From positions 139,132,457 to 139,175,357 of the forward strand of contig NC_068984.1 in assembly GCF_001194135.2 (NCBI RefSeq): DNA of 42,901 nucleotides, given 5' to 3'. Both the position numbers and the translations under genes were made by a program. Shown one piece after another: positions 23,027 to 23,439 of this stretch. The DNA comes from Octopus bimaculoides. Its lineage: Eukaryota. The stretch's first letter is position 1. Each line of letters begins with the position of its first letter. Below the pieces are notes generated by a model. That model was given only the letters and a program-made list of their open reading frames with translations, was not told the origin of the DNA and did not search any database.

Positions 23027-23030
23027 GAGG

Positions 23031-23351
23031 ATGAATTTGATTCCTGCTTCGCTGATCGTGTTGTGCTGTGTTGTTCTTCATTGCCAAAGTATGCGGTTTC
23101 ACGGGACGCAAACCATGCACCAGGTTCCACTGGAAATAGATGGAAATAGACAAAGAAGCCTCGCGGACGATTACGATACTTCTCGTATGCGTCAGTTGCT
23201 CACGAACTTCAAGCTCCAAAGAATGTTGAGAAAACGTGCTGACGTGGCATACAACAGTGATTATTTGCTTCTCTTAGATAAAATGAAAAACCTAGTTGAT
23301 AAACAGGAGTCTGATGCATGGAACAATAAACTTAAAGACCTTGGTAAATAG
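23031..23351 (+). CDS. Secreted neuropeptide/peptide-hormone precursor, 106 aa; predicted mature 35-aa amidated class-B-GPCR-ligand-like peptide (ELH/CRF/DH44-like length and C-terminus, secretin/glucagon-like N-terminus)
   Basis: Intact ORF with hydrophobic signal peptide (aa 1-20), pro-region, RKR dibasic site (aa 67-69), peptide aa 70-104 and terminal G-K-stop amidation signal. Flanked by a strong acceptor and AATAAA. Non-repetitive and not transposon-like. Confidence 0.85.
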   Translation: MNLIPASLIVLCCVVLHCQSMRFHGTQTMHQVPLEIDGNRQRSLADDYDTSRMRQLLTNFKLQRMLRKRADVAYNSDYLLLLDKMKNLVDKQESDAWNNKLKDLGK

Positions 23352-23433
23352 TTGTGAGATCTTCATAAAACGAATACCGGTTCTCTAACAATATACTGTA
23401 AACTTAAATATTGCCAATCTTGTTGAATGGGAA

Positions 23434-23439
23434 AATAAA
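23434..23439 (+). promoter_or_regulatory. Candidate polyadenylation signal AATAAA
   Basis: 82 nt after the stop codon, followed by AT/T-rich sequence. Confidence 0.6.

Follow-up and report, generated by a model that had tools for sequence, protein, structure and literature searches.

Precursors of the ELH/DH44 family in lophotrochozoans (for example, Crassostrea gigas DH44 and gastropod ELH from Aplysia) combine a signal peptide with long peptides flanked by basic sites, and these peptides are 31-42 amino acids (aa) long and end in a glycine followed by one or more basic residues for amidation. In vertebrates, CRH and urocortin come from small precursors that carry one long amidated peptide at their very C-terminal end; CRH-family genes have two exons, and for human UCN the entire coding region is stated to lie in the second (PMC7226788). 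Among the bilaterian peptide families described as absent from cephalopods, ELH/DH44/CRH is the most prominent: no ELH/DH44 was found in any cephalopod data set, including the Octopus bimaculoides genome, the Sepia central nervous system, and the Euprymna genome, and De Oliveira et al. proposed a loss of ELH/DH44 in Cephalopoda (PMC6425005). In our literature search, no subsequent paper described ELH/DH44 from a cephalopod. Here, we describe a gene predicted to encode a small secreted prohormone with one amidated 35-aa peptide, located in a 42,901-nucleotide (nt) stretch of the O. bimaculoides genome (contig NC_068984.1, positions 139,132,457 to 139,175,357; hereafter the window, in whose coordinates all positions are given). 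Judging from its motifs and its conservation, we put the probability that this is a real, previously uncharacterised, functional octopus gene for a secreted peptide prohormone at about three in four. What is new is the gene; the prohormone type itself is already known.

The open reading frame (ORF) extends from 23031 to 23351 on the plus strand, which carries every feature of the gene described below. It starts with ATG and holds 106 codons followed by TAG, a complete coding sequence in a single exon. A 3' splice site can be recognised from sequence motifs immediately upstream (22985-23026), with a CTAAT branch-point candidate (22999-23003; branch A 24 nt before AG), a polypyrimidine tract of 39 nt (22985-23023; 85% pyrimidine), and a CAG acceptor (23024-23026). 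The exon start would be 23027, 4 nt before the ATG, and the first four exon nucleotides, GAGG (23027-23030), are a remnant of the 5' untranslated region that completes the "...L R" preceding Met in the O. vulgaris gene model. When we asked for a 39-nt tract with a pyrimidine content of at least 84% directly before an NAG, the acceptor at 23024-23026 was the sole such site on the plus strand of the window. A candidate polyadenylation signal, AATAAA (23434-23439), lies 82 nt past the stop codon and is weak evidence because this hexamer occurs at 1.14 per kb in the window. No second copy or paralogue of the exon was found in the window, where it is single-copy and not a repeat.

The predicted precursor opens with a signal peptide (aa 1-20, MNLIPASLIVLCCVVLHCQS; 23031-23090), indicated by a hydrophobic core of 14 residues (LIPASLIVLCCVVL; mean Kyte-Doolittle value 2.94) and by small residues at -3 and -1: by heuristic criteria, the putative signal-peptidase site lies after S20 and is preceded by C-Q-S, whose C and S occupy positions -3 and -1. 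It is followed by a propeptide of 46 aa (aa 21-66; 23091-23228) that is basic, with an isoelectric point (pI) of ~9.95, and then by an RKR prohormone-convertase site (aa 67-69; 23229-23237), the only multi-basic cluster in the protein. The remainder consists of the predicted mature 35-aa peptide, ADVAYNSDYLLLLDKMKNLVDKQESDAWNNKLKDL (23238-23342), and a G105-K106 amidation and trimming signal with the TAG stop (23343-23351). The sequence-only reading, an earlier interpretation made from the DNA letters without database searches, had described the ORF, the acceptor, the signal peptide, RKR, G-K-stop, AATAAA, and the 35-mer at these coordinates, and all of them were found in the sequence.

Applying the established biochemistry of the regulated secretory pathway to this precursor, we infer four processing steps. 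The signal peptide would be cleaved off after Ser20, and a prohormone convertase would cut after Arg-Lys-Arg69. Carboxypeptidase E would trim the basic residues, including the C-terminal Lys106, and peptidylglycine alpha-amidating monooxygenase would convert Gly105 into the amide of Leu104. The expected products are one mildly acidic, largely helical 35-residue Leu-amide (calculated monoisotopic mass of 4081.083 Da, versus 3995.083 Da for the O. vulgaris peptide; pI ~4.5) and one basic 46-residue propeptide. The locus would then be the final exon, and the only one with coding sequence, in a spliced octopod gene for a small secreted prohormone, and the 35-residue peptide would most likely be an intercellular signal that acts through a G-protein-coupled receptor (GPCR).

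Evidence for a real gene comes from Octopus vulgaris, the one other species with which the protein was compared. In this species, the orthologue P0001 (E 2.5e-53) shows 87% identity across all 106 aa, has no indels, and retains the start, the predicted signal peptide, an identical RKR, the 35-residue peptide length (31/35 residues identical), and the G-K-stop. Its gene model spans 124 kb and joins an exon ~124 kb upstream to the acceptor equivalent to 23024-23026. We conclude that the model is spliced at this acceptor because the 32 extra N-terminal residues of P0001, which derive from the upstream exon, have no collinear counterpart in the window on the 5' side of 23027. The O. vulgaris annotation was built from Iso-Seq and RNA-seq transcript models, protein alignments, and ab initio predictions (PMC10700109). 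The prepropeptide interpretation of the sequence-only reading is thereby supported, both by the retained features and spliced gene model and by the existence, in one related octopod, of an orthologue with conserved KR and GK sites.

The two species split ~34 Mya (PMC10700109). In a neutral-substitution simulation, the probability that the ORF stayed intact and kept at least 87% aa identity was <=0.016 at a divergence of at least 0.10 per site, and such conservation was reached in 0/4000 trials at a divergence of at least 0.15 per site. Because neutral evolution over ~34 My would very rarely keep such an ORF in this simulation, the conservation points to purifying selection, with the neutral divergence taken from the age of the split.

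What kind of hormone the gene might encode is a separate matter. One possible account is that the 35-mer is a highly diverged cephalopod ELH/DH44/CRH orthologue that signals through octopod CRHR-type class B GPCRs and raises cyclic AMP. The architecture of the octopus precursor favours this account. First, it has a predicted signal peptide and a long peptide at basic sites, as do the C. gigas DH44 and Aplysia ELH precursors. Second, the 35 aa between RKR69 and G105-K106-stop compare with 31-42 aa in family members and fall within the ~31-46 residues expected of such a peptide. Third, the predicted amidated peptide is the last of its precursor and is followed by GK-stop, like the ...GLGK-stop of C. 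gigas DH44; the small precursors of vertebrate CRH/urocortin likewise close with one long amidated peptide. Fourth, the coding sequence lies wholly in the last exon, in parallel to human UCN (PMC7226788). There are also differences from ELH/DH44: the octopus precursor has one amidated unit, whereas those of non-gastropod molluscs have two or three (PMC6425005), and the octopus peptide is acidic (pI 4.5), whereas most ELH/DH44 units are rich in Arg/Lys.

Formal homology tests speak against the ELH/DH44/CRH account. Pfam returned no family at E<=10, including the ELH (PF02323) and CRF (PF00473) models. A phmmer search of 1.84 billion representative proteins had the octopus orthologue P0001 as its sole match, and phmmer of the mature peptide against PDB chains gave chance matches only, with no CRF-, secretin-, or PTH-type peptide among them. 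We assembled a family set of 30 published ELH/DH44 units from molluscs, an annelid, and nemerteans (Supplementary note S2 of De Oliveira et al. 2019; PMC6425005). A custom hidden Markov model (HMM) of these 30 lophotrochozoan units gave the octopus sequences 0.5-3.5 bits and aligned their L..LGK tail only, and when the octopus pair was compared with the family in hhalign, the probability was 0.5% (E 0.12). A profile search of a large protein collection with the alignment of ELH/DH44 units yielded 2 matches among 254 candidates, Aplysia califin and Lymnaea ovulation hormone, and was uninformative on cephalopods. All formal homology tests to ELH/DH44/CRF by sequence are negative, and the family assignment made in the sequence-only reading (ELH/CRF/DH44) is not established: Pfam, phmmer, the PDB search, the custom HMM, and hhalign were non-significant throughout.

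Scores calibrated against shuffles and controls were less uniform. In a semi-global BLOSUM62 comparison with ELH/DH44 units, the two octopus peptides reached z 3.0-3.1 (equalled by 79 and 52 of 10,000 shuffles), similar to accepted distant homologues in the same test (human CRH, 3.8; UCN1, 3.3; Drosophila DH44, 4.1), and ten unrelated hormones gave z 0.3-1.8. The control hormone sequences are intended as yardsticks only. The conserved N-terminal motif of the family reads L-S-(I/V)-N-x-x-L-x-(S/A)-L-A-D-M-L, and in the best register the octopus peptide matches it at N, D, L, and D. A position-specific scoring matrix (PSSM) of these 14 columns placed the best register at VAYNSDYLLLLDKM, with 6.2 bits (p 0.04) against at least 19.6 bits for every true member, and two family residues that are at least 90% conserved, S and L, are replaced by A and Y in the octopus peptide. 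This register is the ungapped alignment to Aplysia ELH that the sequence-only reading had proposed; the choice of register stood, whereas the score and the two substitutions leave it far from the level of true members. The Aplysia ELH details quoted there do match published sequences (ISINQDLKAITDML; 36 aa; ends ...LLEK-GKR and ...FLEL-GKR).

At the C terminus, the family pattern R-x-x-L-x-x-L/I-NH2 compares with ...NNKLKDL-Gly-Lys in the octopus precursor: L(-4) and L(-1) match, amidation is predicted, and N(-7) is additionally common to the octopus peptide and unit 2 of C. gigas DH44. The C-block PSSM scored -0.2/1.8 bits for the octopus pair (p 0.14/0.06). The N and C blocks combined reached 6.0/8.0 bits (p 0.022/0.008) versus 5.9 for human CRH, such that the similarity of the octopus peptide to the lophotrochozoan profile is of the same size as that of human CRH. 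The combined score exceeds those of 15/15 unrelated hormones, all of which were <=-0.2 bits. The anchored scores and the semi-global z values come from more permissive comparisons tied to the cleavage sites, and the positive signals they give are weak.

The same comparisons also show how little specificity the resemblance carries. Secretin/glucagon/PACAP/GHRH and PTH are likewise long hormones that act on class B receptors, and their whole-peptide scores are comparable to those of ELH/DH44 (window/O. vulgaris peptide: z 4.0/2.1 for the secretin superfamily and 2.8/2.5 for the PTH family). Direct similarity to vertebrate and insect CRH/DH44 was not above shuffles (z 1.4/0.9), and 3/34 circular rotations of the peptide reached the observed ELH/DH44 score. 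Because secretin and PTH families score similarly or better, CRH/DH44 only 1.4/0.9, and rotations can equal the score, the ELH/DH44 resemblance is not specific at the level of sequence. In our view, the peptide has the look of a generic long hormone of the class B type; the data are compatible with ELH/DH44/CRH membership and do not demonstrate it.

Support of another kind for the ELH/DH44/CRH account comes from the receptors. With a Mytilus CRHR sequence (PMC7200681) as the query, we found octopod class B GPCRs of the CRH-receptor type in O. vulgaris (P0037; E 5e-98), O. sinensis (P0043), and Argonauta hians (P0039), all of them named CRF receptor 2 or 2-like and all with HRM and 7tm_2 domains. 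Against PDB, P0037 scored best with CRF1R/CRF2R (293 bits) and lower with PTH1R (202 bits). P0037 and P0043 are only 54% identical although they come from sister species, and they therefore represent two paralogues, with intact hormone-binding and seven-transmembrane domains; Argonauta has at least one CRHR-type receptor. Receptors of the type cognate to CRH/urocortin thus occur in octopods. Transcripts named CRF receptor 2 have been measured in O. maya and are listed in O. vulgaris, and CRF-like immunoreactivity in the optic lobe of O. vulgaris was described by Suzuki et al. 2003, as related by papers that cite that study. Since the CRHR-type paralogues have been kept and CRF-like immunoreactivity is on record, a ligand is to be expected. 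Class B receptor genes number more than 13 in O. bimaculoides, and many of these receptors are orphans (PMC7200681), so that other receptors are also candidates for the peptide. Receptors retained alongside a ligand reported missing make the ELH/DH44/CRH idea plausible, and it is unproven.

Taken together, the family is not assignable from sequence, and a highly diverged CRH/DH44/ELH-type ligand is our leading specific hypothesis, held tentatively and at less than even odds. It was also picked after the sequence had been seen, which counts against it. In its fullest form, the hypothesis states that the gene is the "lost" cephalopod CRH/DH44/ELH-type hormone, too diverged for homology searches, and the natural ligand of the two octopod CRHR-type GPCRs, which may be so, without being the outcome one should expect. 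If true, a peptide system for stress, diuresis, or egg laying persists in cephalopods, and the published conclusion of its loss would be overturned. An orphan, conserved, predicted single-peptide amidated precursor of fitting size and architecture offers a concrete and cheaply testable candidate for a hormone system believed to be lost in cephalopods. Even if the family link fails, the gene adds an uncharacterised secreted peptide to the signalling repertoire of the octopus, and it is an example of the small single-exon peptide genes that annotations lack. Catalogues of cephalopod neuropeptides are sparse, and a 2026 preprint counts just one neuropeptidome survey, for Sepia.

It is also possible, if again short of an even chance, that the peptide is octopod-restricted and stands outside known families, either as a lineage-specific neuropeptide or hormone or as an exocrine product of the salivary gland or reproductive tract. 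This would agree with the lack of any homologue beyond Octopus among the 1.84e9 representative proteins, with the non-significant outcome of all family tests, and with the generic character of the similarity. The peptide string was absent from searchable paper texts and from the supplements of two papers, and within these searches the statement of the sequence-only reading that this is not a named cephalopod neuropeptide holds. Many short secreted proteins of cephalopod salivary glands have no homologues outside Cephalopoda (bioRxiv 10.64898/2026.02.02.703354), and among them the "doppelganger" toxins described in that preprint resemble the octopus gene in having short precursors with dibasic sites and in being often octopod-restricted. 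The toxin genes differ in that they lie in tandem arrays with an ORF that usually spreads over two exons, whereas the octopus gene is single-copy in 43 kb and has a one-exon ORF. Against an octopod-restricted origin stand the anchored motif score above 15/15 unrelated control hormones, the fact that class-B-type hormones are typically long, single-copy, amidated C-terminal peptides, and the orphan pair of CRHR-type receptors, which requires a ligand.

Another alternative, and an unlikely one, is that the ORF is non-functional. It would then have arisen by chance in the last exon of a long non-coding RNA or of a wrongly annotated transcript, and the closeness of the two species alone would account for its conservation. 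Several observations favour this alternative and weigh against our interpretation of the locus as a prohormone gene. ORF length by itself is not significant, as 0.65 ATG-ORFs of at least 106 aa are expected per block-shuffled window versus 8 in the real window, and those 8 are mostly microsatellite translations or derived from transposable elements (TEs). Conservation is uniform along the precursor (identity to O. vulgaris of 85% in the signal peptide, 85% in the propeptide, and 89% in the mature peptide), and this comparison shows no visibly stronger constraint on the peptide than on the other parts. Were neutral divergence as low as ~0.05 per site, 87% identity and an open frame would be unremarkable in the simulation. 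When the window protein was looked up by its exact sequence, no recorded gene call had this same product, and P0001 is annotated only as a "hypothetical protein". Two further points weigh against the prohormone interpretation. The AlphaFold2 model places a helix over aa 76-103 (peptide residues 7-34) with low confidence (mean predicted local distance difference test score of 52.6) and suggests helix propensity only. An argument from a strongly amphipathic helix was dropped, as the hydrophobic moment was not above shuffles (p 0.19-0.59).

Against a chance ORF stands the coincidence of five features: a predicted signal peptide, a single dibasic site, a G-K-stop, an ATG placed 4 nt past the one strong acceptor of the strand, and 106 codons free of indels. 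The frame would also very seldom have survived neutral evolution over the ~34 My that separate the two species. The sequence-only reading had called this the only clean non-TE ORF in 43 kb, which proved broadly right, since the other ORFs tested in the window were Tc1/mariner remnants or had no Pfam match, many of them being of low complexity.

Least probable by our assessment is kinship of the peptide with ligands of the secretin/glucagon/PACAP or PTH type, in which case it would act on one of the many octopus "cluster A/B" class B receptors. In favour are the scores of the window peptide against both groups and the more than 13 class B GPCR genes of O. bimaculoides. Against it, the secretin score falls to z 2.1 in O. 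vulgaris, where the peptide Asp2 that would match secretin-family Asp3 is Gly, the superfamily motif H/Y-x-D/E-G/A-x-F-T and its N-terminal His/Tyr are absent from the peptide, Pfam Hormone_2 and the PDB search gave no match, and the scores themselves rest on control sequences that are yardsticks only.

Returning to the precursor of the proposed prohormone, its propeptide may have a function of its own because it is as conserved between the two species as the mature peptide. Within it, aa 33-66 (23127-23228) show a faint pattern like that of a DH44 unit, L.I[D/N]G....SLAD...R.R......QR[M/L]L, followed by RKR. This segment was the best local match of both HMMER and hhalign, with a z of 2.35 that is not significant. 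A second, degenerate DH44-like unit in the propeptide was considered and rejected, given that SLAD is SIED in O. vulgaris and that the segment has no amidation Gly.

The window is heavily gapped, in keeping with the 713,915-contig O. bimaculoides assembly that PMC10700109 describes. Seven runs of N, 2013 bases in total, occur in the 43 kb (7627-8564, 15649-15729, 19688-19873, 25507-25968, 26768-27000, 33983-34085, and 41964-41973), and several listed ORFs that cross them are artefacts. No tRNA or Rfam match was found anywhere in the window. Directly 3' of the gene lies a 231-bp element (23530-23760), a dispersed repeat that resembles a short interspersed element and has no tRNA or Rfam match itself; three diverged copies with 72-79% identity lie on the minus strand (16012-16196, 39534-39702, and 18663-18723). 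Of the two Tc1/mariner transposase remnants, the one at 35298-35684 on the minus strand matched HTH_Tnp_Tc3_2 (E 8e-12), and the one at 2929-3207 on the plus strand gave weak helix-turn-helix matches only. Four otherwise unrelated ORFs, at 11694-12089 (minus), 16700-17233 (plus), 19458-20036 (plus), and 37662-37970 (minus), have the motif LFQSFDCGHAG.PPF in common, which suggests that the window holds a further family of dispersed repeats. Finally, dense microsatellites of the (TG/CA)n and (TATG/ATAC) types, for example at 22000-22650 and 24240-24400, give rise, near the gene and on either strand, to long but spurious ORFs whose translations are rich in C/V/Y/I/H.

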